Assembly: GCA_020891255.1 (NCBI GenBank)
Contig: BQFW01000006.1
Location: forward strand, 992,001 to 1,056,000
Length of the DNA stretch: 64,000 nt
Direction of reading: 5' to 3'
From: Entomortierella parvispora E1425
Lineage: Eukaryota > Fungi > Mortierellomycota
Positions 25,912 to 48,800 of this stretch are shown here, piece by piece (the first letter of the stretch is position 1; the number at the start of each line of letters is the position of its first letter). The notes beneath the pieces are model-generated. The model ran no database searches and was not told the origin of the DNA. It saw only the letters and a program-made list of their open reading frames with translations. The translations under genes and the position numbers were made by a program.

Positions 25912-28900
25912 TCAGATCGGAGGGAGTTCAGGGACAGCACCATAAACTTGTTTGAACGCATCGCCATATTTGGCCAACCATGCCACACGAGCGACACGAC
26001 GTCTTTCAACTCGCTCTTCTTCTGACTCACGCTCATCATCCTCGTCGTCTTCTTCATCGTGATCTCCATCACGTTCGTCGTCATCCTCGTAATCCCCGTC
26101 CTCCTCTTCTTCCTCTTCTTCCTCTTGATTGTCTTCTTCTGAAGATTCGTGATGAGCAACGCCAATGTTGACAGTTGTATCCTTCACTTGGTGGGTGTGC
26201 AAAAGATTCTGATGATCTCGATTCTCCAGTGTCTGCTTCTCCTGTGGGGAAAGACGGCAGGGATGGCTATCAAAAGGGTGATGGACTCCTCGAGATCGAA
26301 GACTGAAAGACCCAACGGGACTCTTGATTGGGCTTTCAACCATGTACACCGGCGCCTGGATCATAGCCTTAGCAGGAACTGCTTGAATTGGGTGAGGTGT
26401 AACACGAACTGGCTGAGGACCAGTGATTGTGCACTGGTTCTGGTAAACCAATGACCGCTGTTGCTGCTGGTACTGCTGATGCTGATGCTGTTGGCAAGGT
26501 TGATGAGGCTCGATAAAGATCATGGAGCCCGTGGGTGAAGGAGAAGGAGTCGAACCCTTGGCAAAAGTCACCTTCTTTCTCTGAGAGGAAGGGGTGCCAT
26601 CAGGCATCAGAGGTCGCTGCTGCCTCGTTTTAGAGGTCGGTGATTTCTTGAGGCAAGACTTTAGAGGGCCCATGGGGGCATTGTTTCGACGAGAAGACTC
26701 GCTGAGGAGACGTTTTTGTTGCTGGTTCTGTTGAGCAGATAGCTTGTCCATTCCTTTCCGATGCAGTTTGGCCACTGTCCTTCCACCGCCGCCGTTGCTG
26801 TTGCCATTGGCCAAGTGGCCATTACTGCCATTGATCCCACGCGTTTGATTCTTGTCATCTCCGTGGTCCCCTCCGTTGCCCACCACAGCTGCTTGACTTA
26901 CGGAAGATAACAGCGTCAGAGCCGAGAGTGTCGTTACAGCCAATGTAAAAGTAGTCGATTGCGGGTTCTGGGGTGATGATGAGGATCCTGATCCAGATCC
27001 GCCGGCCAAATTCAGATTCGAGTTGGATCCGTTAGGAGACGAACTACTTCCCATGGACGTCGACCAAGAAGAACGAAGCAGAGGAGAGGATGAAATAGAC
27101 TTCGCAATCTTGGCTACCAATCCACCCCCGTTGTGGTTGCTGCTGCTGCCTGCGGCGTTGGCCGGCCCATGGTGGTGATGAGGAACAGACAATCCGCTCA
27201 AATCACCATCCTTGGTACTGTTATTGTGGATAGGCTGTGGTGAGTCGATGGGGGCGGCTGCGGAGGTGAGATCAAAGAGCAGTGGCAATGCTGGCGAGGC
27301 CATGACGGTTACTTCTCCGGGTGAGACTTCGGCCTGTATCGTGGCTCTATCCGCTTCATGCGACAAACTTTCATCGCTAGATAGAGCCACCGTTGACAGG
27401 TCCTTCTGGTCAGGCTTGGAGGCATCCAAAAAAGACGTTGATTTTGTGCCATCTATGACGATCCTTGGCAACTCTGGTCCACTATCTCTCTGAAGCACCA
27501 CCACCTTCGCAGCAAGTTCAGTCACAGGACTCGGTACAGACACTTTGCCCTCACCTGCCTCAGGGAGACCTTCAGCATCCGTTGAAGGACTGTCGTTTGT
27601 TTGATCAGAAAACTCTGAAGCCTGCACTTTTGCAGTTGCAAGGACTGTGTCATTGCCTGGATGAGGCATTTCGGCCGACTGAAGCAAAGAGGGGCCCATC
27701 GAAGTCAAGTGCTCCGTGGACACCAGCACACGGAGAATATCGCCCCCAGCTCCAGCGGGGGAAGTAGGGGAGATATCCCCTGTCATAGCTGCATGATCTA
27801 CTGTCTCGACCAGTGCACTGACCGATTTCAGTGGAATGGCCTGCTCTGGTTCCTGATCGATGTCGCTCACTCTGGCCACGCCTTTCGTTTGCACAGGCGA
27901 TTGGGGTGATCCGTTGTTGACTTCCTTTGCAACTTTTTGATCCTCAGGCGTGGCTGTCATAGGAGACACGACCGATTCGGACTGAAGAGTGGCATCGGTT
28001 CTCTTGACCAAAATCGGGACTGGCGGCAAAGCAATCTGAACAGAATTGGAGACGCAACTGATGGCGCCTGAGATGGTCGAGATCCTGTTATGATTGTATT
28101 GGGACACAATCTCGATTGGTAGCTCCAAGAACGCGCCCATCCGGCCCTTGAAGAAGAACTTGATGATGAAGGTGTACTCGACTTTGACCAGTTCTCTGTC
28201 AGTGATTGTCAGGGCAGTTTCCTACAAGAAAGGGAATAGTAAGCCGCCGTGGTATAAAAAAAAACAAGTCTTATCTTTTGAACTTACAGGAAGACGCATG
28301 CTGAGTTTGTACATGGATAGCGACTTTGTCGTCCTAAAATCCTCATAGTCCTCATAATACCCCTTCAAGTGATTGTCATTTGCATGACTCTCCTCAGCTT
28401 GGGCTGGGACATACGCCTTTGCGACTTTCACCACATGAGTATCCACAAGTCGCTTCCTCCTTATTTGTCGCGACTGTTGCTTGGAATCCGATGGAAGCAC
28501 AGCTGGTGACCTCTCGTGAAGGTCTGGTTGATCCTTCTCGTCATTAACGAGAGAATAAATCTGGATCGTTTCCACCAAGGATACCTTGATGTTGACCACC
28601 TTCATCAATTCTGATTTACAGACAAACATGTCCATCGTAACGCTCTCACCTGCTGCCGCTACAGACTTGTCGATATGAGCCCCAAATCCAACTTCATCCA
28701 GTTGCTCGCCCTTCTCATCCTCACGTCTGCTGCTGCGTTTGGAAGATGAATGGTACTCTGGCAGTGCAAGTGAATCTATCCTATCGCCTTGAACGATGGA
28801 TCGTGCGGTTCTTGCATCCGTCGGATCACCCATTGCGGAGAGCAGTTGCTGCTGGGCGGTGGGTGGACCCTGTGATATTGCTGCCATGGCGCCACTTGTT

Positions 28901-30806
28901 GCCGAAATGGATCGAGTCATACCCTGTCGTTGGTGGTAGTATTGTCCTCCCGAGCCAGTTGATGAGCTTAATGACCCTCGACGCCGGTGATGGTACCGTC
29001 CATACCCATGACTGCTACTATACTGATACTGGCTACTTTGACTGGACGTCGCGGGCCCCAGGCCCCAAAGACTGTAAGGTCGTACGGATGCGGTGCCCAG
29101 AACAGAGTTGGACTGTGGGATAACGAAACGAACGCCAGCCTTTGAAGGCGACATCGCTGACTGTGACGTGATTGTGCCCGCAGCAGATGCGGATGAGGGA
29201 GTAGCAGAAAGAGGAGCAACATCATGTGGCGAGGTTACCTTGGAGGCACGAACCTGCACCAGCTCAAAGAGCGAGACGGGAAGGGATTGCTTCAGAATAA
29301 ACACCTCTCGTCCTAGTCGGATATGAACGAGGCTATTGAGAGAATTAAAGAGCTACTAGTTAGAAGTCGCGTTTCACTCTAGGAGCATTTCTTTTCAGAG
29401 GAGGACTTACGCCGTTAATTGGTAATTGATGGAGGCATGGGCACTTTTGAAGGATCCTCCGACTTTTTCAGGCACTCTCATTGCAAAAGGGATCCCTTGT
29501 CGGGTTCCAGGTAGAACATGGCCAGGCTCAAATAAGGGCATTGGTTGATGTTCAGACAATTTGTTGTCATTTGACAAATTGTTCGGGAAGGAAGATAACG
29601 TGTTCTTGCGCGACATTGAAAGTGTGGTGGGTGCGGTGGATGTGATGGAGTAGGGCTGTGAAGACGATGAGGAAGATGTCGATGTTGATGCCGACCCTGA
29701 TGACGCTGAGGAGGAGGATGAATAGGATGACGAAATTGACGATGATGTGGAGGACATTGTTGGAGAAGTTGAAGTGGAGCTCGTAGAGGCAGATGAAGAG
29801 TCCTGAATCCACCTCATCTCTCCTACTGACAGAGATTGTGTTTTCTGCAGGAAACAATGATGGTCGGACTTTGTCCTCAACAGCAATCCATTGCCGGTGG
29901 TCACCTCTAATGAAAATGCGCCGCAAAAATATAGACGTGTTGGGTGAGTGGAGAGGCAATGGGGGCGCTGGAGTGCGTAGGGTTCAATAGGAAACGTAGA
30001 ATTCTACACATACCTTCTATTCCTGCGAGTTCAATTTCGATGTGCTCGACGTTGACCATACTGCTCTCTCTGTTACTCTTACTTCTCTTTCCACTCCTGC
30101 TTTTAGCTCGGTCGGGAGATAGCATCCCATTGGATTCAGCCAGAGCCGGCGATATACGGTGCTTATCTTTCCCCTTGATCTTTTTCAATGCCCCATGATG
30201 GCCCCTGCCAACGACACCCGCGGCGGCCTCTGCAGCGGCTGTTTTCAGTTCCGAGGACAACTCTTTGGCTGTAATAATGAGGAATCCTCTCAATGTCTCT
30301 CCTGCGGCCTTGATGGGCTCAGGCACCTTCCAGTCCACCTTCACGGCTGGATGCTTCTCAAGCATCTTGCATACCCTTGGGTACTCTGTTACGGGAGCTG
30401 AGCCTGTTGTCAGTTCGAATGACGCCACAGGCCTTACTGCCCTCTCTTCTGCTGTCATGAGCTGCGACTGACGATGCAACTCTTGGCTGGGCTGTCGGTC
30501 CTCCAATGGTTCTGAGCAGCCGTCAAGGTGTTTTGTTGCAAAAGAGCTTGTGCGGGGGGTTACGATCATAGGTGTTAAAGGGGAAACTGGGATTGATGTG
30601 ACGGGAGACGATGCCTGGGATTCGTACGACATTGACACGCCTGAGTGGCCGGATGTGGCTGATAAGTGTAAAGAGGGACTGAAGGGGGAAGCATCGGCAA
30701 GCCTGGGTATAGTGTTTGCATAGCCTGGCTTCGTTTTTGGGTGAACGTCGACGGTCAGAGGTGCAACCTTTCGAAGCGGTTGTGGCGACGATCTGGCACT
30801 GATCAT
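25912..30806 (-). CDS. Large alpha-arrestin-like protein; multi-exon
   Basis: Arrestin-N-like segments (AAGETLRGFLII, VEHIEIELAGIE, GIPFAMRVP..VGGSF...INYQLTA) and arrestin-C end (VEYTFIIKFFF...FLELPIEI). One LPEY motif and a long disordered C-terminus. Start MISARSS at 30806. Confidence 0.8.
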
Positions 30807-31279
30807 GACTGAAGTGGAGAAAAGAGTGGCAATGAATTGGTAGGATGGGGCGAGTGATAGGACAATGAGGCGTGCACTTCTAAGGATACCTTGCCAATTG
30901 GCTGAAGAGTTGACGGGACGAGAAGGGCAAAAGAGGAAGAAGAGGAGGAGGGGAGGAGGGGAGGAGGGGTATTCAAGTGGTGGCAAAGAAGAAGGTCGGA
31001 AGAAGGATCTTCAATGCGAACGGTGGAAAGCAGATGGAAGGGAAGAATACGTTGACACTGACGGCCAACGAGCAAGGACTCGCAATCTTTCAAGAGCGCA
31101 CTGCATTTGCGCCGCGTTGTGCCCATACCATTCCAAATGCTAATCCTAGCCAGTTACCCGTCTGCTCAACAGTCGGTTGCATCACACTAGCTAACTCACT
31201 GAGTGGCTTACTGTGCACTCTCTATTACTACCTTTGCGGATTGAGTCTGTTGAATAATTCTCCCGGCAGGGATTGGAAC

Positions 31280-31310
<31 letters not shown>

Positions 31311-31726
31311 GGTTGCTGTGTTACTGCTCTGCCCGCCAGTGTTGTTGGCCTGAAGGATGGAGAAGGGCAAGGGACAACATTATCATGACGGTGTTCACAG
31401 TAACCAGGCTGTGGATCTGTAAGAGAGGGTCAATTGCTTGGCGCACCCTCAGCCTCCGCTGCATAGCACTCAAAGGCCAAGAACCCTGTTTGGTTCTTCG
31501 CATGTAGCATGCAGCCTCAGAACTGGAATACACAGTACACGTGATTCAGGAACAGCGTCTGCGCCGCGCGCACACACCTTAATTGCAATAGCCTCCAGTG
31601 GAGCAACGCTGTCGGTCTAGGGACCATGGCGCGGTTCGCCGCTCAAGAGGACAAAGACCCCCAAAACAGGCAGCAGTTTGTCCATCTGCCAAACTTTTCT
31701 TCCATTCTCCATCTACTCATTTCCTC

Positions 31727-32488
31727 ATGGCCACACGAACATCACAAGCTCCATTCTTTCGTTGGAGGTTGGCCCTCGCTCTGATCGCCACGGTCAATGT
31801 TGCGCTCATGGCTGCCTACTACGGTCTCTCGGCTACCTCGTTTTCAGGAATGGGATACGGACCCCAGCTGTTTTGGGGAAACTGAGCCGAGATAGTTATC
31901 AGCGCCATTTTTTTCTTGAGCTATTGCTATTCAATTTTCGGGAAAGCATTCTTGCATCGCTTCCTTCGCTCGTTCCTCCTGCTTGCTCTGACTGTTGTCA
32001 TTTTGTATGTAGACCTTCAAGAGGTTCATTTTGGACTCTTGGTGTCTGAAGACCACCAGCTTTCCCCTTTTGAATGCGATGGAGACACTATCTGCGGCCT
32101 CTATTGGGCCACTATCTTTGTATCCATTATTCTTGGCTTCTTGGTGATCGTCGATGCGGGTATTTCTCCCAAGCTTGGTCCTCTCGAGCCCAAGGCCTTC
32201 GGCTCAAGAAATCGCAAGAGCTCGCCAACCGTCGTCGTTGTCCCCTCCGTTCAGGATCAGGGACTTGCATACTCTATTCCAAATCCTTACGCCATGCCCC
32301 AGTCGGTCCAAATGCAACCGCAGCCCTACTATCAGCAATCGCCATACTCAACACCGCCAGCACAATTGCAACCAGCCGGCTCTTACAAGCTGGAGATTCA
32401 GGGTCAGGGATACCATCCCCAACTCCTGGCTTACTCTCAGCCATACAGCTCCCAGGGACCTAATGTTCAGCACCAATATCTATACTAA
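31727..32488 (+). pseudogene. Four-TM MARVEL-like gene, array copy 1; single in-frame TGA at 31883-31885, otherwise fully open including the Q/Y/P tail
   Basis: MATRTSQAPFFRWRLALAL...FWGN*AEIVISAIFF...PFECDGDTICGLYW...GPLEP... ORFs 31598..31885 and 31916..32488 are in the same frame. Confidence 0.8.
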
Positions 32489-33004
32489 TGAAAGGGAACG
32501 GTGCACACAGATGCAATTGAGTAATAAACGTACCATCGAAGCTTACCGTGCTGAGAGATTGTACTTTTTCATACTTCTGCAGGTGAACCGTGTGTTAGAG
32601 CACGTTTTCATTGGGCTTGGTAGCACCTTTACTTTAAGTGGCCTTGTCATGAAAAAATATGAAGAGCATGGAGAATAAGAATGGGGCAAAGCGCACACCG
32701 CCTCTCGACAACCTACCGTCTGCGTAAATTGGGGAATGCCTCTCCTCGGTGGGACAATATTCCGGCCTTCTCTTCGGGAGATCATTTTGTGGTCCTTTAC
32801 TTACCTTCCCCCACTTAGCTGGATATCGCAACCTTTGATGGAGGCTACGATAATCTTCCGCCCCTGGCCTTTTTTTTTTTTTTTTTTTGGGATACCTTCA
32901 AGAGAGCGGCGTGGGCATCGGCCAATAAATCCAACTCTAATTTTCTCGACATTTCTTTCTTTCTCTTTTGCTCTCTTGCCTCTTTAATTGTCCACCCATC
33001 CATC

Positions 33005-33736
33005 ATGGTCTCGTACTCAGCTTTCCGTTTCTGGAGGATCGCCGTCGCCTTCATCGCCACGCTCAATTTCATCGCCATGGTCACATACTATGGTCGCTGG
33101 GCCAGCTATAGCTCGGGACTAGGGCTTATAGCGCCGACTCTGTCCTGGAGGGATTGGATAGTAACTGTCATTAGCGTTGTGTTCTTTATCAGCTACTGCT
33201 ACTCAGTCTCTGGGAAACGCAGCCTTCTGCATCGATTCATTCGTGCATTCTTCTTGTTTGCGCTATCAGTGTTGTTGTTGTACGTGAACTTGGTTGCGAT
33301 TCGTTTCGCCCTGCAATTGCAACAGAACATCCCCGATGATATTGCCTTTTCTTGCCATGGCTTTCTTGTCTGCATCCTCAGTTGGGTTTTTGCCTTCATG
33401 TCTATCATTCTTGGTTTCATTGTGATTTTTGACGTGGGCATCACTCTCAAGCTTGGCCCATGCGAACCGAAGTCTGCCACCTCAGGACTCCAGCAGAACC
33501 AGGCGTCCGTAGTCGTTGTGCAGCCTCAACAGGGATACTATCAGCCTCAGCAATATTATACTCCTCAGCCGGACCAGATGCAACAGCAGCAATATCAGCA
33601 GCAATACTACCAGCAGCCAATACAACAGAACTCTCCTCCCCAACAAGAGAGCTCTTTCAAGTACGAGCAGGTGCCACAGTCCCCTATGTATAATCCACCA
33701 TATGGCTACCAGACGCCACCTATCAGATATAACTGA
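33005..33736 (+). CDS. Four-TM MARVEL-like protein, array copy 2 (intact, 243 aa, Q/Y/P-rich tail)
   Basis: Four hydrophobic segments, W-x-D in loop 1, HRFIRA after TM2, FSCHGFLVCILSW (C-x5-C), and a tail containing QQQQYQQQYYQQP. Confidence 0.9.
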   Translation: MVSYSAFRFWRIAVAFIATLNFIAMVTYYGRWASYSSGLGLIAPTLSWRDWIVTVISVVFFISYCYSVSGKRSLLHRFIRAFFLFALSVLLLYVNLVAIRFALQLQQNIPDDIAFSCHGFLVCILSWVFAFMSIILGFIVIFDVGITLKLGPCEPKSATSGLQQNQASVVVVQPQQGYYQPQQYYTPQPDQMQQQQYQQQYYQQPIQQNSPPQQESSFKYEQVPQSPMYNPPYGYQTPPIRYN

Positions 33737-34028
33737 CAATGCGGTAAATAAACACGAACTGAGGCATTTCTCCAGTCGACAAGGACACGTCGACTCTGTC
33801 ATGGTGTGCCAGAAGAAGACAGAAAGGGCTGCAGGGATTGTGTATGTTGGCAAATGGTGACACCAATGACGACGAGACAGTCGAAACGCAAAAAAGTGAA
33901 CCGCGCTCATGTATAAAAGCAAATGCTTGTGCTCTTGCTCCAGAGTCAATTTACAACAAACATCGCCGCCAGATCTCTCTCTTCCCTTTCCCTGCATCCT
34001 ATCCGTTTGTCCCATCCGTTTTACCACC

Positions 34029-34502
34029 ATGGTTTCGCAAATAGCCTTCCGCCACTGGAGACTCGTCGTAGCCCTCATCGCCTTTATCAGCTTCGTCATC
34101 ATGGTGGCCACCTACATTCGCCTCAGTGTCCTGGCTGCAGGACAGATGGAACTTCGCTGGGCCGACTACACCCAGATTATTGTGAACGTGATCTTCTTCC
34201 TCGTCACCTGCCATGGAGCCTTTGGAAAGTCCTGGGGGGTTCCTCGCTTCTTGCGCGCTTTCCTCTTGTTCGCACTCGCCGTCTTGCTTTTGTATGTGAA
34301 CCTAGAGTCCGTTCATCTTGCGATTCAGTTCCCCGTGTTGGGCTTTGGATGCGACTCTAACGCCTTTTGCGAGCTCTTTTGGGCCAATGTCTTTGCATCC
34401 ATCATCAATGGGTTCTTTGTCATCTTTGATGTGATCTTGACACTCATCGTCGGCCCTCTCGAGTCTACTCAAGCTTCCGTCGCCCCCGTCAAGGTTGTAT
34501 AG
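34029..34502 (+). CDS. Four-TM MARVEL-like protein, array copy 3 (157 aa; tail cut by TAG at 34500 and TAA at 34533)
   Basis: MVSQIAFRHWRL...FGCDSNAFCELFW...GPLES. The homologous Q/Y tail is still readable in frame beyond the stops. Confidence 0.8.
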   Translation: MVSQIAFRHWRLVVALIAFISFVIMVATYIRLSVLAAGQMELRWADYTQIIVNVIFFLVTCHGAFGKSWGVPRFLRAFLLFALAVLLLYVNLESVHLAIQFPVLGFGCDSNAFCELFWANVFASIINGFFVIFDVILTLIVGPLESTQASVAPVKVV

Positions 34503-35219
34503 CCTGAAGTTAGCCAGTATACCCCTCAACCATAATACGTGCCTCAGCAGGAACAAACGCAATCCAACCAACAGCAATACTATCAGCAGCAGCCGGCCAT
34601 CACAGTGTGATCCTGGTGTTTATAAGGTTTACCATCTCAACAGCCTCGTTACCTGGCCAAAGCGTACCCCTACAGCCCAAACCTACCTTCACTTTCCCCG
34701 CAGCGCAGCTTGTACAGTACAATACTCTATTTCAAGAAAAAAGAAAAAAGAAAAAACCTAATCGTAATGGAATAAAGCGCCTCAACTTTATCTGCTTCCA
34801 AGATACCATCCCCTCATGACTTGAGCTCTTAGAGTGATCGTCTTGAATTCGCCATGTGTTTCCCGGGCGTCCCCTATAACACCGAACTTCCAAGTACGAC
34901 CGACAATGAGCAAAATGAGCAACAGAGATTGAGCTCACCAAACACATCTTGGTACCTGATTTTTTTAAACATGAAACCTGTGATGCGACAAGACATTCAA
35001 CATGCAAAGAAAAAAAAAAGAATGTGAAGAGCGCTCCTGTTCCAGGTCGCTGGTTTTTGGCCGTATTGACTGTACATGTACTGTAAGTACGGCCACTGCT
35101 GGCGATCTGCCTTAAAAAAAGAAAAAAAAAACAGAGCTAGCTCCTTCTCTTCTTTCCTCTCTTGTCTCCAAACCCCTTCTCCACCATCATCCTGCTGTCA
35201 GTTCATTCCACCTGTCATC

Positions 35220-35714
35220 ATGGTCTCGCAAGCAACCTTCCGACGCTGGAAGATCGTCCTTGCCTTCTTCGCCTTTGTCAGCTTCATCGTGATGGCGATC
35301 AGCTACATTTACCTCAGTGACTTGAACGATGGTCAGGTCGATATACTTTGGGGCGATTCTGTCCAGATTATCGTCAACGTCACTTTCTTCTTCTCCGCGG
35401 TGCACGGGGTCTTTAGAAAGCCCTTTGATATCCCGCGCCTCCTGCGCGCCCTCTTCCTGCTTGGACTAGCCGTCTTTCTTTTGGTTGTGAACTTGATGGT
35501 CATTCACGCTGCGGATCTAGCCTCTTCGTACGGATACCGGGGCTTTGAATGCGACTCTGACGACTATTGCTATCTTTTTTGGGTCCATGTCTTTTCATCT
35601 ACTATCATTGGGTTCCTTATGATCTTTGATGCCATTTGGACATTCATGAGAAGGTCTCCCAAGTCTGTAGAAGATATCCCCGCCGCCCCTCAAGGTTGTA
35701 AGACCGAAGTATAG
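35220..35714 (+). CDS. Four-TM MARVEL-like protein, array copy 4 (164 aa; tail lost by an apparent frameshift near 35690)
   Basis: MVSQATFRRWKI...LWGDSVQII...FECDSDDYCYLFW. The 3' DNA aligns with copy 3 only after a 1-nt deletion. Confidence 0.8.
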   Translation: MVSQATFRRWKIVLAFFAFVSFIVMAISYIYLSDLNDGQVDILWGDSVQIIVNVTFFFSAVHGVFRKPFDIPRLLRALFLLGLAVFLLVVNLMVIHAADLASSYGYRGFECDSDDYCYLFWVHVFSSTIIGFLMIFDAIWTFMRRSPKSVEDIPAAPQGCKTEV

Positions 35715-36694
35715 CCATTATATCCCCTATACCATCATTTATTTCCCAGCATCAATATGTAGCCTCTACTCCATTTTACCATCTTGGTCGTAATAAACAA
35801 GCCACAACCAAATCGTCCAGTTCGTGAACTATCATCCTACTCACGACCCTAATTCTCATCGTGATCATTAAGGTCGTCACATCCAAAAGTACTTGTCCTT
35901 TTCGTGGTATTGATTCTCCCGTAAAACGGCGACCAAGTGGTAATTTGGAACGGGAGGAAGTATCTACAGGAATAATTGTTTGCAGATCCTGGGAAATGAG
36001 CCTCGTGCCGTAGAAGGAGAACTTTTTGGTGTTGGTGTTTGTGACTTGATCCATCATTGACTACAAGTGTCCAATTGCCGTTAAAGCATGCCAGTTGCAA
36101 CGATGTGGACTGACATCAACAAAAGAGAAGTGACATAAAATGGCTCACAACAGGACAACGTGCTCTGCGGCTCTAAACACAACCTGACTTCTATGGCCTC
36201 ACGTGTATGAAGCCCCACCAGGCCCAACGCAACAGCCGCAATGTCATATGTGATATTTTGCAACTGGCAATGCAGCAGCGCTCTCCCTATCCACAGAAGA
36301 GCTCTTGCAAGGTAGACCCCTACGAAGCACCGCCACAGTTGCCTTCTCTACTCAAATATGTTGCTCAACAGGCATCATCCATGAAGAGTCGACCGAATGG
36401 TCAAATGTCTCAGACTGCGTTTCGCGATCATCGGCTGTACTTCGGAATTTGGCGCCCCTGTATTTAAACATGAGACTTATGATGACAAGACAGTCGAAAC
36501 GCAAAAAAAAAAAAAAAGAACGTGTAGAGCACTTCGCTGTTCCAAGTCGCTGATGTTTGGTATAATACATGTATTTAAGTACTGGCGATCTGCCGCAAGA
36601 AAAAAAAACATGGCTCGTTCCTTCTCTTCTTTTCCCCTCTTGTCTCCAAACGCCTCCCCTAGCATCTTTCTGTCAGTATATTCTACCTACCATC

Positions 36695-37321
36695 ATGGTC
36701 TCACAAACAACATTCTGACGCTGGAAGATCGTCGTCGCCATCATCGCCCTCATCAGCCTCATCGTCATGGCGGCCAACTACATTTACTTCTCCGCTCTGC
36801 TGAACATGTATGATGACCCAATTTTCAGTCACTGGTTCGACCATGTCTGGATTATTGCGAGCCTGGTTTTCCTCTTCACTACCTGGTTCGGTGCCTTTGG
36901 AAAGCCTATCAAGGTCCCGCGCTTCCTTCGTGTTTTCCTGGGTGCGCTCGCAGCGTTGCTTTTGGGTGTGAACTTGTGGATCCTTCACTTTCAGGTTGTA
37001 GACCTTCTACATGGATACCCAGCCTTTGACTGTGGCGCCGATGTCCAATGCAAGCTCTCCTTGGCCACCACTTATTTGTCCGGCATCAATGGACTCCTTG
37101 TGCTCGTTGATGTCGTCTGGACATTGAAAGTGGGCTCTCTTGCGTCTGTTGGATCTCCCCCCACCTCTGTCGAATCGTGCGGCCTGACGTTAGCTATTAT
37201 AACCCCCAGCCATACTACATGCCCCAGTCCGACCAAACGCAAGCAGAGAAACAGCACACACATTAACTACCAGCATCCAATGCAGCCGTTGCCAAATCCT
37301 GACAACACTTACAAAGTTTGA
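36695..37321 (+). pseudogene. Four-TM MARVEL-like gene, array copy 5; TGA at codon 8 (36716-36718) and frameshifted tail
   Basis: ATG GTC TCA CAA ACA ACA TTC TGA CGC TGG AAG, versus copy 4 ...TTC CGA CGC TGG AAG. Downstream ORF 36767..37321 contains FDCGADVQCKLSL. Confidence 0.8.
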
Positions 37322-37821
37322 CAAGTCGGGGCAACATTCTTAATACCGGACTCGAGCACAATCCTGCAACGTCCAAGCACGCAGCGCAAGAAAAAAAGTG
37401 TACATTAATATCAGCATTGTAAATAATAAAGTGGCCGCAAGTCTGGCTCTGTTCTTGCAGCAACTCGTCTTGTTTCCGAGATCGAATTCCCCTTTCGGTC
37501 TTTACATGCTGCACACGCTTGCTTGCACTACATGTGTTTGTCGCGACGATACGCGCGCGCACGACCAAATCCCTTTGGGTGGTGCCTGAGTTCTACACGT
37601 GACATCCATGACGAAAAGTGGAAAGCAAAAAAAAAAAAGAGCAACGCTCACGGTCCTCCGGCCGTTAGGTCGGCAGCGTGGCAGTGCAAGAGCAGGCTCT
37701 GCCCCCTGGGTCAATTGGCAACAAGAAACGGCGCTAGCTCCCTCTTTTCTTTTTTTCACCCTTTCCTCTCTTTCCCTCTTTGCCTCCCCTGTCCCATCTG
37801 CTTGACTCTCTCACTGCCGCC

Positions 37822-38556
37822 ATGGTCTCGCAGACAACCTTCCGCCAGTGGAGGATTGCCGTGGCCCTCGTCGCCTCCATCAGCGCTATCCTCATGGCGG
37901 CTACCTACATTCGCCTCAGGATTCTGTATGGACAAGATCTTGATCTTTACTGGGGAGACTACTCCGAGATTATCGTGAGTGCGATTTTCTTCTTCACAAC
38001 CTTGTATGCTGCCTTTGGGAAGCCTCTCGGGATCCATCGCTTCCTACGCGCCTTCCTCTTGTTCGCACTAGCAGTCTTGATTTTGTATGTGAATCTGAAG
38101 AGCATTCACTATGAGGTTCAGTACGCTTCGGAGTCTGGTACCCCCGCTTTCGAATGTGGTACCTCCACCTACTGCAAGCTTAGCTGGTCCAGTGTCTTTT
38201 TATCCATTATCACTGGGTTCCTTGTCATCTTTGATGTTGCCTTTACACTCATGGTCGGTTCTCTCGAGTCTGCAGCAGCTGCCCCCGCTATCGTCGAGGT
38301 TGTACAGCCTTCAGCTGGCTACTATCCTCCGCAGCCATACTACGTGTCCCAGCCGGACCCAATGCAGCAACAACAGTACTATCAGCAGCCAATGCAACAG
38401 CAACAATACTACCAGCAGCCAATGCCGCAGCAACAGCAATACTATCAGCAGCCATTTCAGCAAATGACCCCTGACGGTTCGCAATTCCATGCCCAAGCAC
38501 AACCCTGCAGCTCACAACCATCTCCGATTCCCCAAAAACAACCGTACCAACAATAG
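37822..38556 (+). CDS. Four-TM MARVEL-like protein, array copy 6 (intact, 244 aa; tail with 3x PMQQQQYYQQ repeats)
   Basis: MVSQTTFRQWRIAV...YWGDYSEII...FECGTSTYCKLSW...; ATG at 37822 within ORF 37780..38556. Confidence 0.9.
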   Translation: MVSQTTFRQWRIAVALVASISAILMAATYIRLRILYGQDLDLYWGDYSEIIVSAIFFFTTLYAAFGKPLGIHRFLRAFLLFALAVLILYVNLKSIHYEVQYASESGTPAFECGTSTYCKLSWSSVFLSIITGFLVIFDVAFTLMVGSLESAAAAPAIVEVVQPSAGYYPPQPYYVSQPDPMQQQQYYQQPMQQQQYYQQPMPQQQQYYQQPFQQMTPDGSQFHAQAQPCSSQPSPIPQKQPYQQ

Positions 38557-38665: not shown

Positions 38666-39318
38666 TTATGAACCCCCTGTCCTCTTCGTGATGTTGTCGT
38701 TGTTACTGATACCATTTCTAGTATTGATATGAAAGAACCCTCTAGCCTGGCCTTCAGGCCCGTCAGAGGCAGGAGCAAATCCATGCGCAGTAGACAAAGA
38801 GGTATGGAGGAGCCATGGTGGATACTCTAGATGGTACCATGTCGGCTTGGAATTAGCCTCTTTCGTCCGTTTCGGAGGAAGACCCTGCTTGAGTTCGAAC
38901 TGAGGAACAGACGAAGTGGCCAACTCCTTTGTGACCAAACTCAATTTTTGTCGGTAATCTACCAAGTTGTCCGAGAAAGCTGATGTGGAAAGTAGGGTAT
39001 CGCGGACCGTTTTAAAAAAAAGGCGGAGAAGCTGGGAGGAAATGAAGGTCGCATTTTTTTTTTTTTTTTTTTACCGTCGTAGGCCTCTGGAGTCTGGTTT
39101 CGACAAACCACATCCTCTGATAGTCCGGTTTCTGGCATCTCGATATGAAGGTCTGGTCGTGTTCTCTTTTTGCCTGCAATGACTGCACAAACACGCACAC
39201 CTGTCGGGGCTAGACTCTGAGTCTCTGACGAGGAGTGGGATGGTTTGTGAGTTGGCTGATCAATTGCGGGTGCAAAAGACGATTTGACAAAAGTTGGAGT
39301 CACTGATGGCGGAATCAT
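38666..39318 (-). CDS. Possible small two-exon hypothetical protein (exons 39201-39318 and 38666-38979)
   Basis: A GTGTGC...CATCAG intron joins MIPPSVTP...SLAPT to AFSDNLVDYRQKL...TWYHLEYPPWL...GGS* in frame. The 5' end is uncertain. Confidence 0.4.
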
Positions 39319-43585: not shown

Positions 43586-44342
43586 TCAGCCGCGGCAAGC
43601 GCTCAGACAGGATCTCCAAGTGCTAGCACAGCTGTTGAGACAGGGGTTACTGGATTGGCACTGGCCAGTGCAGATGGTGACCGCACGCTGATCTCCGGTG
43701 CAAGTACTGAGGCAGCTCTTTAAAGCAGCATCATTGTTATGACAAGTATCTTGGCAAGAGTCAAGAGCGCTGCCACAGTCGACATTGCATTGGAAACCAC
43801 CCGAACCAGTCGTTGGTGCAGGATTTGGAGCAGCCGTGATAGTGGTGGTGGTGGTGGTGGTGGTGGTGGTGGTAGGAGAAGCAATGGTGGAAGTAACATA
43901 CGCCTGGGAGGGAGGGGACAGGTATCCCGTAAAAGTAGTGGTAGGAAAAGCCCCTTTTGACTGGATTGTGTTGGTGCTTGTAGAGCCAGGGCTTCCGGCA
44001 GAAGGCACACCGCCACCACCTGTGATGCCCTTACTCCCTGAACCTTCTGAGGAGTTCTTGTTCCAGACAGTGCCGCCGAGGACGCCGAGAACAATGGCCA
44101 AAACGAGAACGAGAACAATATAGAATTCCTTTTTGCGATAGTCACGCACGTTGAACAAAAAAGTACCAAAGGTGTACCGACCATGGCTATAGCTGTTGTT
44201 GTCCATTGGCTCGCAAGGGATAAAAGTGACCTCCCCGTTCTTGTAGGGCGTTGTTGAGGTTGCTGGGGAAACCTGAACGATCGTGGTTGCACTGCTGTTG
44301 CCCGCACCTGGGACGGGGTAAGCTCTCAGCTGCTGCTGCTGC

Positions 44343-44378
<36 letters not shown>

Positions 44379-44417
44379 CGTTGTTGATGTTGTTGTAGTT
44401 GTTGCATCTGTTGCACC

Positions 44418-44458
<41 letters not shown>

Positions 44459-44884
44459 CCGTTGCCGTTCGTATTGCAAGTAGAGGTTTTGTTGTTGCTC
44501 CAGCTGCCGTTGCTCTTCCAATTGCAACTGCCGATTGTACTCTTCTTCATATGTCAGTCCTTCATAATTGGGCAAATTCTCCTGCTCTTCAACTACTTGG
44601 CCCGCCGGAGCTCGAGAGGAGTGGGACGAAGCCTCGGTCGAGGTTGATACAAGTGGTGAAAATGTGGATTGATGCGAGTTCTCAGTTTGATTGGAGTGAG
44701 GGTTTGTCGGCGCTATATTGTGAGGTGAGATGGCTGCAGGGGGTGGGGGCACATAGTCGTGAATGTGTTGCGGTGACCTCAGCAATGTTGCCTGGTCGCC
44801 CTGAGGCGATGCTTGTGGAGGCACAGTCAAAGATGAGCCTTCATCCAAAGTTTTTTGAGGTAGGTTACTGTCAGTGATCGTCAT
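43586..44884 (-). CDS. Single-pass (predicted type II) membrane protein: poly-Q N-terminus, TM, S/T stalk, 12-Cys C-terminal domain
   Basis: Start MTITDSN at 44884 in ORF 43586..45058. TM FYIVLVLVLAIVLGVLGGTVW is preceded by RKK; the C-terminus has six Cx3C units. Confidence 0.85.
44331..44470. repeat. (CAG/CAA)n poly-glutamine coding repeat
   Basis: Trinucleotide runs (tgc/tgt on + strand) encoding Q tracts on the minus strand. Confidence 0.9.
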
Positions 44885-46847
44885 GATATACAAGATGGGT
44901 GTGGCCAAAGGAAGGGTTCGTGAATCAATTTTTTGTCGCTTTTCTTTTCGTTGAGGATAATGAAGGAGCAGGAGAGGACCGATGATGCTGCCGGAGGGTA
45001 AGGTAGGGTGAGATGGACAAGAGAGACGAAGAGGGAAAAGAAGGGAAGAGAGCCACAAAAAGAAAAAAAAAAAAAAAAAAAAAAGGGTAAAAGGACGTTT
45101 TCAAAACCCAGATATATATGAGAGAGCCCGAGTGCATCTTCCTCCGGGCGAACGATCGCCAGCCTCGTCAATCTCGGTTTCGCAGCCATGTCGTTGCACT
45201 CTCAAATACACAGCCCAAAGTCGAGTGGCGCCCACCATGTAAACGATAAGAAATTGCCTGTAGACGGAACTTTCTTTCTCTCACGCGACCATACTTGTGT
45301 CTCTCTGCTCTTCCCCTCTCTTCTCTGTCAAGGATTACCCGCGCGTTGGAAATGGAGAAGAGTCATCCATCTCTAGTCTTTCCTCCTCAGAATATTGAAG
45401 GCGTCTCCTCCATGATGTGTGTGACTCTCCATCGCGGCACTCTGGATTGATCAGCCGTGGCATCTGTCAGTTGTGGATTCTTTTTTTTTTCGACGTGCCA
45501 TAAACACAGACGCCAATATAGAATTTACTGCAATGGTGTGAAAGCGGAGAGGTGCGGCGCGATCCGAAGGCTGCCAGTATTTCACCCGACTGGCTTCCAG
45601 TTTTTGGAGAAATATAATGAGCTCTACGACTGTCTCGTCGAGCCCAGGTGCCATGTATCCACGTATCCTTGGACAGTGGTAGAGACAGATGGAGGAAGCG
45701 CGATTTAACCTGAAGCTACAAATTGATGGCGGCCCGGGCTTTCGAAGGACCATGGATATGTAACCTGACCTCCTCTTCCAACCACTCGATATTTTCAAGC
45801 CACCTGTCGATGACTTTCGTGGACTATAGCAGTACTGCAATATGTTTATTGTGCTCGTATATAATAAAACCATTGTTTTTACCATAAACTAGGGGATAGG
45901 GATAAGAGTGTGAGGCTGGTGCATTGTTCTGTTGTTGCTATTTAGAGTGTAATGGGAAAGCTCAAGGGAAAAGCGCGAACGATGTTTATTGGTATGAAGT
46001 ATGGGGTATTTATACTAAAGGTTGTGCAAGTGAAGTGTTGTTTGAGGTGGTGGTAATGATGGCAATAATCGCGGTGATTGTACTTGACCATTTGTTTGTG
46101 GCTTTGCTGTGAACGAAGGCACTGCATGGTACGAGACCTACTTCAAAAAAAAAAAAAAAAAAAAAAAAAAAAGCAGGAGCGAAGAAATCAATCAAAGGCA
46201 CCAGACAACCAAATAAGCTAAGGGCAGGAGAAATAAGGGCAAGGGCAAAGTAACGGGTTAGCATAGAGGAAAGACCTGTGCGACTGATGCAGTGGATAGG
46301 GTACAAAGAGAAAGGAGTCTCCATTGTGGGCTTGCACAGGAGCGTGTCACATCATTTCTTTCATGGTCCCGAAAAAGGTCTAGGACAAAAACCAATTCAG
46401 CGGAGCACAGGAACGAGAACTTTCTAAACTCTCGGTCTGCTTAACGTACTTTGTCAAACGTACACACACGTGGATTCAGCTGTCAATGTATGGAGAATAA
46501 AACGTCAAGGTGGTACATGGAACAGTTGTGTGTTTGAACGTTTAATGAGGGAATTCTGAATAAAAATCCAAGCTCTTGTCTGAGCCACATGTAGGGAGGG
46601 GCATGCACATCGGGAGAGATTTTAATCATCCAGATAGATGACGGTGCAGTATGTCAACCGTCCCCTGGAAGAACATCTGCCTTAGCCATGCTTTCGCCTC
46701 TTGATTTACAATGTTGCTTTCGATGGCGCTGTTGTCATATTTTCATTGACCCGAGGAAATTTGACCGCTCACTCGACTCCGGTATAAAGTGCCGGTTTGT
46801 GAAAGAAAGCGCTGTGTCGTAGTTGGCCATGACGATAAAACCTGAGA

Positions 46848-48241
46848 CTAGACTTGCGCCTGTGGATCATGAACTTGACCAGTTGATATTCGTCTTTTGT
46901 CTTCTTCTTCCTCCTGTCTTCTCCAGAGTTCCGTTACTGGATCAGTATAGTCCCTGATACGCGACGGGCTTGCATATTTGAGCACAACGTCACGGTAATA
47001 GCGGCAGTACTTTTTTGCTGTCACTGTCTCGCCTTGAGCCCCGCACCAGACCTATATATACGAAAACCAAGACGCCAGAACAATGATGAGCTGTACATTC
47101 CCTTTGGTTAGGAATGATAGGTAGGGAGCGTCTCTTATAGGCTTACCTTCCAAAGAACCTCGCCGAGTTCAATTTCTTGATTTTGCTGTTGCCGCAAGCT
47201 TTGGTCCTCCTCAATGAAACTTTGGTCCTCCTCACTGAAGCTTTCGATACTTTGGATTGATTTGCGAGAGCGCTTCTGAAACGGTGTGGGTTCCGACATA
47301 GCCATTTCCAATGTGCGTGTTAATGACTCAGGGTCTGGCATGGGTGTTTTGACATCAGGTATCGGTGGGGAAGGATCTAGCACCAAGGTCTTTGAACGCG
47401 AGCGAGAATGTGGAGGACTCGGGGATGCTTTCAGAGACGAGGACCGCCGCAGAGTCACAACTCCAGACTCCATCACTTCATCTTCGAGCTCATCTTTGTT
47501 GGGGCCTTCTTTGTTGGGTCTGGCTTTCTTACTTGGATCACGTCTCCTGCGACAGACTCTCCGCTTGAGCTGTTGGTGCGAGGTCTCGTTACCCTCTTCT
47601 TCATCTTCAACATCGTCCTCATAATCATCGTCCTCCTCCTCCTCCTCAAAGGCACTGTCCTCTCGGTAATCTAGATCCTTTGCATCATCACAGTCAATCT
47701 CCAAATCAGAATCCTCATCGTAATCTGTTTCGGCCACGTCTTTGACCGTCAGGGGAACACCGACTCCAGGCTCTATCTTGGGCACACTATCAAGCTCCAT
47801 GCCAGCACTGTTGAGGGTATTGACATCTTGCTCAGAACAGCCTTGTGGAGAGGTATTGTCATCGTCGTCTTCATCCAGGGTCAGATCAATGATTTCGACT
47901 GGCCGTGCGGATGCCTTTTCATGGTTGTCGTCGATGGAGGCTACTCGGAGATGAGAGATCTGGGTTGTGATGGAGTTGCTTCTGCTATACGTGTAGCTGG
48001 GTTTCCGGGTAGGGTACTGGCGCTCGTGTTGTTTCTGGCCCTGATTCTGGTTCTGGTAATGATCCTCGCCTCTTGCAGAGGGGCGCGACCACCTCCGTTT
48101 CTGATAGGGGTCGGGCTCCAAGGAGGAACATGAAGGCTTTTCGAGTCCATGGGACGACGTCTTGATCGACCTACGCCTGTCGAGGGTTTTTTGACCCTCC
48201 AACCAACTGTCAAAGTCGCACGATGGACTTGATTCCTTCAT
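46848..48241 (-). CDS. Hypothetical acidic, disordered protein with NLS-like and SIM-like motifs; 2 exons
   Basis: Start MKESSPS at 48241 in ORF 47135..48787. A GTAAGC donor after EVLWK joins exon 2 (VWCGAQGETVTAKKYCRYYRDVVLKY...QAQV*), with the stop at 46848. Confidence 0.75.
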
Positions 48242-48800
48242 CTGGCGTGGTGTGTGCAAGCGGAAATGTAGTGTATACAAGTAGACTATTTGTAGAGCAG
48301 ACAGGCACTGTGGTCTTTTATCTTTTATGAGATAGAGAAGAGAGAAGGAGAGACAGAGAGAGCGAGAGATACAGGTAGTTTCGTAAAGTGGATCAAAGAG
48401 CGGGGGGGGGGGTGATGCAGTGATATGTGATGAGGATGGGGAACAAAAGAAAGAGAAGAAAAGAGAAGAAAGAAAGAAAAGGAACAAGAAGAAAAAAAGG
48501 CTTTTTATGAGGATGGATGCTCCCATGCTGCGAAACAATACGCTCAAAGGACGTGCTTTTTTTGGTGGCCACCAAGGGACCCTCGATCCCTTTCCTTTTT
48601 GGTGGCATCGGACAGCGGCAATCTCAATCGACACAGTGCTGTACAAGGATGCATTCATGCATGCACAAGCTTGCACCTGGTCAAAACCTTGTTCAATATT
48701 TCGGTTCAACACGGTGCTTTGCTGACTAGCTGGACTTTGCTGGGCAGTGGATGGAGGTACGGAATTCAGATCTGTAACCTTGTTCATTCTAAGCGATGAT

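Follow-up and report, generated by a model that had tools for sequence, protein, structure and literature searches.

Comparison with described four-helix membrane proteins

Small membrane proteins with four helices belong to several described families. Those of the MARVEL type, such as synaptophysin, synaptogyrin, occludin and Nce102/Fhn1, have four helices, cytosolic ends and cysteines in an outer loop, and synaptophysin carries a disordered cytosolic tail rich in Q, Y and P. The MS4A/CD20 proteins (PF04103), known from animals, and sarcospan are four-helix bundles whose helix 3-4 loop contains a disulfide. The claudin/PMP22/Sur7 proteins are small four-helix membrane proteins with conserved outer-loop cysteines; claudin and Sur7 carry a W...C...C signature and a beta-sheet in outer loop 1. 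Here we describe a tandem array of six paralogous copies (c1 to c6) encoding proteins of this general shape in the fungus Entomortierella parvispora E1425 (assembly GCA_020891255.1). The window analysed is a stretch of 64,000 nucleotides (positions 992,001 to 1,056,000 of contig BQFW01000006.1, forward strand); the array lies at 31727-38556, and coordinates refer to the window unless another contig is named. The array probably reflects tandem expansion in this lineage, with decay still under way; the four-helix membrane proteins of the array belong to an undescribed family of the Mortierellaceae.

The array family resembles MARVEL proteins in its four helices, cytosolic ends and outer-loop cysteines, and its Q/Y/P-rich disordered cytosolic tail resembles those of synaptophysin and of EMPS_08648, a true MARVEL protein of the same genome. 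Its signature sets it apart from MARVEL proteins: loop 1 contains W-x-D, K/R-Y/F-x-R-A precedes helix 3, and helix 4 has an acidic residue and is followed by G-P-L. Its members are 38% identical between genera, compared with 75-95% for true MARVEL proteins, and occur in multi-copy clusters, whereas the true MARVEL proteins are encoded by one or two conserved genes. The cysteine pair occupies a position analogous to that of the loop disulfide in MS4A/CD20 proteins and sarcospan. However, the array family had no Pfam match to MS4A/CD20, and the structural Z scores of 9.4-11.2 for this group (9.4 for CD20 and 11.2 for FcERI beta) were within helical-bundle noise. Claudin-15 was the best Foldseek match (E 0.042), but the cysteines of the array family lie in loop 2, loop 1 has W-x-D without any cysteine, and the model has no strands. 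The claudin/Sur7 signature (PF00822, PF06687, PF06653) was absent, with a single sub-threshold Claudin_3 match (E 0.051) among 60 family members. The tetraspanin signature (PF00335) was also absent: there was no CCG motif and no Pfam match, loop 2 was short and the cysteines were separated. The tail is comparable to Q/N/Y-rich prion-like domains of the Sup35 N-domain type in its composition (45-65% Q+P+Y) and in its QQxY and YYQQ repeats, which lengthen by slippage, but differs from them in being proline-rich and attached to an integral membrane core.

Organization of the array and state of the six copies

A six-frame search of the whole genome with c6 recovered the five other copies at E-values of 2e-59 to 8e-35. 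All six paralogs are on the + strand, with starts at 31727, 33005, 34029, 35220, 36695 and 37822, as had been described in an initial annotation made from the sequence alone. The units are 60-80% identical to each other in DNA, are spaced 1024-1475 nt apart and are separated by distinct spacers; divergence of this degree rules out assembly duplication. The copies have in common an MVSQxxFRxWR-like N-terminus, W-x-D in loop 1 (W-G-N in c1) and a G-K...R-F-L-R-A motif after helix 2. F-x-C-x5-C-x-L was kept in all six, with a pentapeptide between the cysteines that is unique to each copy. These motifs had all been listed in the initial annotation. The G-P/S-L-E motif after helix 4, which it had also assigned to every copy, was retained in four of the six, namely in c1, c3 and c6 and, as GPCE, in c2; the motif is degraded in the other two, c4 and c5. 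In the family as a whole, 3 to about 13 residues separate the cysteines, and the C-x5-C spacing is peculiar to the array.

The database proteins P0001, P0002, P0006, P0007 and P0056 were taken to be annotated gene models. Two of them, P0001 and P0002, equal the plain open reading frames (ORFs) of c6 and c2, so that introns are unnecessary in the array and the copies are intronless as first annotated. The upstream ~250 nt of c3-c6 have an A-tract and CT-rich leader blocks in common, such as the 5' leader block at 35153..35194 (+ strand), which is 81% identical to the c5 block at 36631-36672. This indicates that promoter and leader were carried along in each duplication. The A-rich tract upstream of c3-c6 belongs to the duplicated unit.

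The array does not encode six proteins, as had been assumed, since only two copies are whole, a further two lack the tail and the remaining two are broken. The intact copies are c2 (33005..33736, +; P0002), which encodes 243 amino acids with a four-helix core and an 89-residue tail of 60% Q+P+Y, and c6 (37822..38556, +; P0001), which encodes 244 amino acids with a four-helix core and a 95-residue tail of 62% Q+P+Y. An intact four-helix core of 157 amino acids is encoded by c3 (34029..34502, +), which ends just past a V-K-V-V motif at a TAG (34500-34502) where c2 and c6 have CAG. Its relic tail at 34503-34610 is still recognisable, and a second stop, TAA, is located at 34533-34535. In c4 (35220..35714, +; P0006) the four-helix core is likewise intact (164 amino acids), and the tail was lost by a frameshift: a single additional base within 35680-35689 changes the frame ahead of the V-V-V-V motif, the stop lies at 35712-35714, and the downstream tail sequence has decayed.

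The frame of c1 (31727..32488, +) is pseudogene-like; it is colinear with the family and its Q/Y/P tail can still be read, and it is interrupted by an in-frame TGA at 31883-31885 (codon 53, loop 1), where the other copies have TGG, TAC, TCT or CAT. The pseudogene c5 (36695..37321, +) contains a TGA at codon 8 (36716-36718), which replaces a conserved Arg (CGN in c2, c3, c4 and c6; TTT in c1), and a 1-nt deletion near 37173, downstream of which the apparent tail is an out-of-frame reading of a once Q/Y-rich tail. Both c1 and c5 are taken to be dead. In contrast, c3 and c4 may have kept a function as partners without a tail, because naturally short-tailed members of the family exist and are conserved across genera. 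No lesion is common to two copies, which shows that the lesions arose independently.

Other explanations for the interrupting codons were rejected. Introns were excluded because the alignment is gap-free and runs codon for codon through the stops, with c1 and c5 in the same frame on both sides. An alternative genetic code does not apply, since the interrupting codons include TGA, TAG and TAA. C-to-T or G-to-A changes account for three of the four stops, as in repeat-induced point mutation, but the copies have diverged far too much for such a process and the GC content (0.47-0.51) is normal.

The database model of c3, P0007, begins at Met25. That of c1, P0056 (169 amino acids; window 30977-31507 and 31727-32488), consists of an 11-residue upstream exon spliced to sequence from mid-helix 3 onwards, thereby skipping the stop and leaving out helices 1-2. 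Both models look like annotation work-arounds and not like real products.

The E1425 assembly (409x coverage; PMC8759367) is based on Nanopore reads and was corrected with Nanopolish and, using Illumina reads, with Pilon. Illumina polishing at such coverage makes it unlikely that the substitution-type stops are errors; the single-base indels of c4 and c5 are somewhat less certain than these stops.

Family membership and phylogeny

An exhaustive HMMER search with the core profile yielded 121 family representatives (counted at 50% identity clustering) at E<=1e-3 and 66 at E<=1e-10. Thirty representatives spread across the whole E-value range were looked up. Among these, 29 (E 1e-41 to 1.5e-4) were "hypothetical proteins" of Mortierellaceae or metagenome entries without a name, and all 29 were consistent with Mortierellaceae; the thirtieth match, a repetitive 1913-residue fish protein, was taken as spurious. 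The genera represented were Dissophora, Gryganskiella, Mortierella, Linnemannia, Podila, Actinomortierella, Haplosporangium and Entomortierella. The six copies matched the family profile at E-values of 3e-65 to 5e-51 and show the family signature, which comprises four helices together with Trp44, Arg76, Cys112, Cys118 and an acid at 138 (residue positions here and below in c6 numbering). Arg76, Cys112 and Cys118 were invariant in every array copy aligned at these positions. In Pfam no family match was obtained for the six copies or for two dispersed paralogs, and a DUF6652 row for c3 at E 0.045 was taken as chance. The family is an undescribed four-helix family that is restricted to Mortierellaceae and has no Pfam model.

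Members of the family also occur outside the array in this genome, on contig C2 (2563972-2564586) and on contig C15 (353543-354124, L008/L019, and 913512-913970, L020). The member on contig C2 (L007/L015) has a tail that is His-rich and not Q/Y-rich, with the metagenomic orthologs P0004 and P0005. The dispersed C15 paralog EMPS_10778 has a P/Q/Y tail of 151 residues. The third dispersed member is distant (E 4.5e-7) and has L-P-x-Y-like motifs in its tail.

Clusters were also seen in at least three other species. Mortierella sp. AD031 has BGX23_011429/431/434/443 on one contig within 15 locus tags, Mortierella sp. GBA35 has BGX29_005774/785/787 with nearby locus tags, and E. beljakovae has the adjacent pair BGZ76_002218/2219. 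A maximum-likelihood tree placed the six copies together with one Gryganskiella protein in one clade, with a Shimodaira-Hasegawa-like approximate likelihood ratio test (SH-aLRT) support of 98. Within it c3-c6 formed a younger subclade (SH-aLRT 97) that contained no member from any other species.

A relative of c1, P0026 from a Joint Genome Institute (JGI) metagenome, was 58% identical, and no related loci of P0026 were found in the metagenome contigs. Searches with full-length c2 and c6 revealed no relative outside this genome that was more than 50% identical, and the best named cross-genus match of c2 was 38% identical. A word-index protein search with c6 alone recovered only c6 itself. The view of the array as a fast-evolving birth-and-death family was supported on both counts: the best cross-genus identity was 38% compared with 75-95% for the true MARVEL proteins of the same fungi, four of the six copies have disabling or truncating lesions, and c3-c6 have no cross-species ortholog.

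Predicted fold, topology and tail

An AlphaFold2 model based on a 60-member alignment had helices at residues 4-39, 44-65, 73-105 and 116-145, with a predicted local distance difference test score (pLDDT) above 90 in the core. The tail had a pLDDT of about 46-61 and is predicted to be disordered, and the model contained no strands. Across the 60 members, the two cytosolic segments (the N-terminus and the loop between helices 2 and 3) were strongly basic, with K+R of 2.4 and 3.3 and D+E below 0.3, and both outer loops were net acidic. This charge pattern indicates that the topology is N-in/C-in and that the cysteine pair lies outside. The model and the charges thus describe a predicted four-helix bundle with both ends cytosolic.

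Several positions were near-invariant in the family: Trp44 (outer loop 1), Arg76 (helix 3, at its cytosolic start), Cys112 and Cys118 (outer loop 2), and the acidic residue at 138 (helix 4), which is Asp in the array and Glu in 54 of the 60 members. Pro147 was strongly conserved (44/60). Outer loop 2 has about 10-25 residues.

Tail length varied widely. Tails of at least 60 and up to 210 residues were present in 31 of the 60 members, most of them with 35-66% Q+P+Y, and the tails of the remaining members had 5-56 residues, most fewer than 30. One short-tailed cluster was more than 90% identical across at least four genera, which indicates that tail-less forms can be functional. The long tails open with a conserved N-V-V-V-V-S/Q-P-like motif. 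Compared with shuffled tails, QQxY (z=8.9) and YQQP (z=8.5) were enriched and PPxY was depleted (z=-2.4). A role as Rsp5/Nedd4 adaptors, with PPxY or LPxY in the tails, was rejected because these motifs were depleted relative to shuffled tails. Inside the c6 tail a 30-nt tandem repeat of 3.4 copies (38359..38463, +) encodes a repeated Q-Q-P-M-Q-Q-Q-Q-Y-Y unit, indicating that the tail grows by replication slippage.

Comparison with MARVEL proteins

None of the six copies matched the Pfam MARVEL model (PF01284) at E<=1, and the two dispersed paralogs were also without a match. Among the 60 family members two matched, the better at E 3.5e-4, below the curated cut-off of 32.8 bits. The family profile found no solved MARVEL chain among PDB sequences at E<=1, with one weak match confined to the tail region. 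The genome encodes a true MARVEL pair, EMPS_08648 (406 amino acids) and a 290-residue paralog; the loci are L009 (contig C12, 828398-828805, minus strand) and L010 (contig C15, 566462-566887, minus strand). EMPS_08648 and 62 relatives, the true Mortierellaceae MARVEL proteins, are the ones that are 75-95% identical between genera. Like the array family, they carry a cysteine pair between helices 3 and 4 and a Q/P/Y/G tail; the two proteins of this genome have four helices, and their tails are long. When the 60-member core was compared with these 63 proteins by hhalign, the probability was 0.5% (E 0.11); a small profile compared with the single MARVEL proteins L009 and L010 gave 3% and 0.7%, respectively.

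In a wide VIA-align structural search, synaptophysin (9bra_s) ranked first with Z 11.9, a root-mean-square deviation of 4.2 and 132 residues aligned. It was followed by a de novo bundle (11.4), FcERI beta (11.2) and sarcospan (10.9), and then by PRPH2, a designed claudin fold, CD20 and synaptogyrin. According to the VIA-align guidance, Z below about 13 is unspecific for helical bundles, so that the value for synaptophysin is within the range expected for any helical bundle. Foldseek found nothing at E<=1e-3 in the PDB; its best match was the claudin-15 given above. All leads in the ESM Atlas were below 0.9, with a MARVEL cluster at 0.80 and a CD20-like cluster at 0.83. The comparison with MARVEL proteins and synaptophysin made in the initial annotation holds only for the architecture (four helices, an outer-loop cysteine pair and a Q/Y/P tail); the Pfam and profile scores do not support it, and the structural scores do not discriminate. 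MARVEL is a fair architectural description by analogy, and membership is not established.

Sequence divergence and selection

Pairwise nonsynonymous (dN) and synonymous (dS) divergence was estimated by the Nei-Gojobori method. Within c3-c6, dS was 0.6-0.9, and between c1 or c2 and the rest it was saturated (>1.4). The dN/dS ratio (omega) was 0.2-0.35 for the old pairs (0.22 for c2 and c6) and 0.42-0.66 within c3-c6. By lineage, counting substitutions unique to each lineage, the approximate omega was 0.91 for c5, which looks neutral, 0.58 for both c3 and c4, which is indistinguishable from neutral, and 0.48 for c6 (p=0.04 against neutrality). Given the small data set, all these lineage values serve as indications only.

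The outer loops had been singled out as highly divergent, and the analysis by region agrees: amino-acid identity was 0.26-0.32 in the outer loops compared with 0.37-0.58 in the helices, and loop dN was higher. Loop dN/dS was 0.24-0.75, with intervals spanning 1, and did not exceed the helix values, since loop dS was also high. The loops are thus less constrained, without evidence for diversifying selection. The suggestion of recognition or receptor-like signalling was consequently unsupported, as loop dN/dS was no higher than that of the helices.

The helix 1 segments (31766-31831, 33035-33100, 34059-34124, 35250-35315, 36725-36790 and 37852-37917) showed lower synonymous difference, with a mean proportion of synonymous differences (pS) of 0.38 compared with 0.53-0.76 elsewhere. 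The 5' 81 nt were 69-74% identical even between c2 and the c3-c6 group. Gene conversion or a nucleotide-level constraint at the 5' end could account for the low divergence.

Origin and possible function of the array

The results are best explained by lineage-specific tandem expansion followed by decay. Each unit of promoter and intronless ORF (1.0-1.5 kb) originated from local duplication, and the array now consists of the two intact copies, the two that lost only the tail and the two that are broken. In the proteins, the two cysteines would form a disulfide, by which the second outer loop would be stapled to the beginning of helix 4. A salt bridge between Arg76 and the acid of helix 4, near the cytosolic face, would hold helices 3 and 4 together. 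The products of c2 and c6 are most likely small membrane-organising scaffolds, to judge from their predicted architecture. Their disordered Q/Y/P tail, with QQxY and YQQP-type units, may provide multivalent weak association with itself or with partners, by analogy with physin and gyrin tails.

Several points weigh against this explanation. Between c1 or c2 and the rest, dS is saturated, and the lineage tests are underpowered, with only c6 non-neutral (p=0.04). Scaffold function and the role of the tail are deduced from architecture, and the clustering in other species from locus-tag numbering and shared contigs. The single-base indels of c4 and c5 come from a Nanopore assembly, albeit one polished with Illumina reads at high coverage.

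A different origin of the family, as a highly diverged but truly homologous MARVEL branch that organises membrane domains like Nce102 or physins, is rather unlikely, though it carries more weight than the other alternatives. The four-helix N-in/C-in layout is the same, synaptophysin heads the structural search with synaptogyrin also among the matches, two of the 60 members gave sub-threshold MARVEL matches, the ESM Atlas has a MARVEL cluster at 0.80, and the MARVEL protein of this genome shares both the cysteine pair in the helix 3-4 loop and the Q/P/Y/G tail. However, the structural scores tie with those of de novo bundles, FcERI beta, sarcospan, claudin designs and tetraspanins, at Z values in the unspecific range, and the best Foldseek match was claudin-15. 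None of the six copies matched the Pfam model at E<=1, the family profile found no solved MARVEL chain, and hhalign with the 63 true MARVEL proteins gave 0.5%. That the whole array is non-functional debris, with c2 and c6 merely not yet stopped, is improbable: damage to four of the six copies and the high omega within c3-c6 would fit, but c2 and c6 have an omega of 0.22 and 730-nt frames that are open despite saturated dS, c6 was non-neutral (p=0.04), all residues invariant in the family are kept, and a clean in-frame repeat is retained in the c6 tail.

Slightly less probable still is polymorphic surface recognition of self/non-self or of a partner, for example an endobacterial symbiont, with the outer loops under diversifying selection. 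The host strain carries a Burkholderiaceae-related endobacterium (PMC8759367). The outer loops are the most divergent regions, the residues between the cysteines differ in all six copies, and the family is clustered with fast turnover. Nevertheless, loop dN/dS did not exceed 1 significantly or surpass the helix values, the loops are short, with about 10-25 residues, and the damage to four copies fits redundancy better than selection for diversity. In a very speculative extension, which we consider more improbable again, hypervariable disulfide-stapled loops would sense a partner (a hypha or the Burkholderiaceae-related endobacterium), prion-like Q/Y tails would relay this by templated clustering, and c3 and c4 would act as decoys or dampers. 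An assembly artefact, that is a collapsed or expanded repeat, has a negligible chance of being correct; the assembly is Nanopore-based, but the copies are only 60-80% identical in DNA, their spacers are distinct and the sequence was polished with Illumina reads at high coverage.

Tandem expansion with decay is ordinary gene-family turnover and reveals no new mechanism. The array nevertheless defines a family outside curated libraries, with about 120 representatives, a clear signature and a confident four-helix model, and it documents tandem clustering, repeated loss of a low-complexity tail and pseudogene formation in progress. For annotation, at least three database models of the array are artefacts of the lesions. 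The copies also provide a natural series of full-length, tail-less and dead forms for probing Q/Y/P tails on small membrane scaffolds.

Flanking frames and homopolymers

Five large ORFs of 359-742 amino acids flank the array on the minus strand (25915-28140, 28225-29304, 29910-30986, 43589-45058 and 47138-48787) and none of them matched Pfam at E<=1e-3. As raw ORFs, they may be parts of spliced genes. Homopolymers are present in the array spacers or just outside the array: T25 at 31286-31310, T19 at 32870-32888, A15 at 36503-36517 and T19 at 39054-39072.

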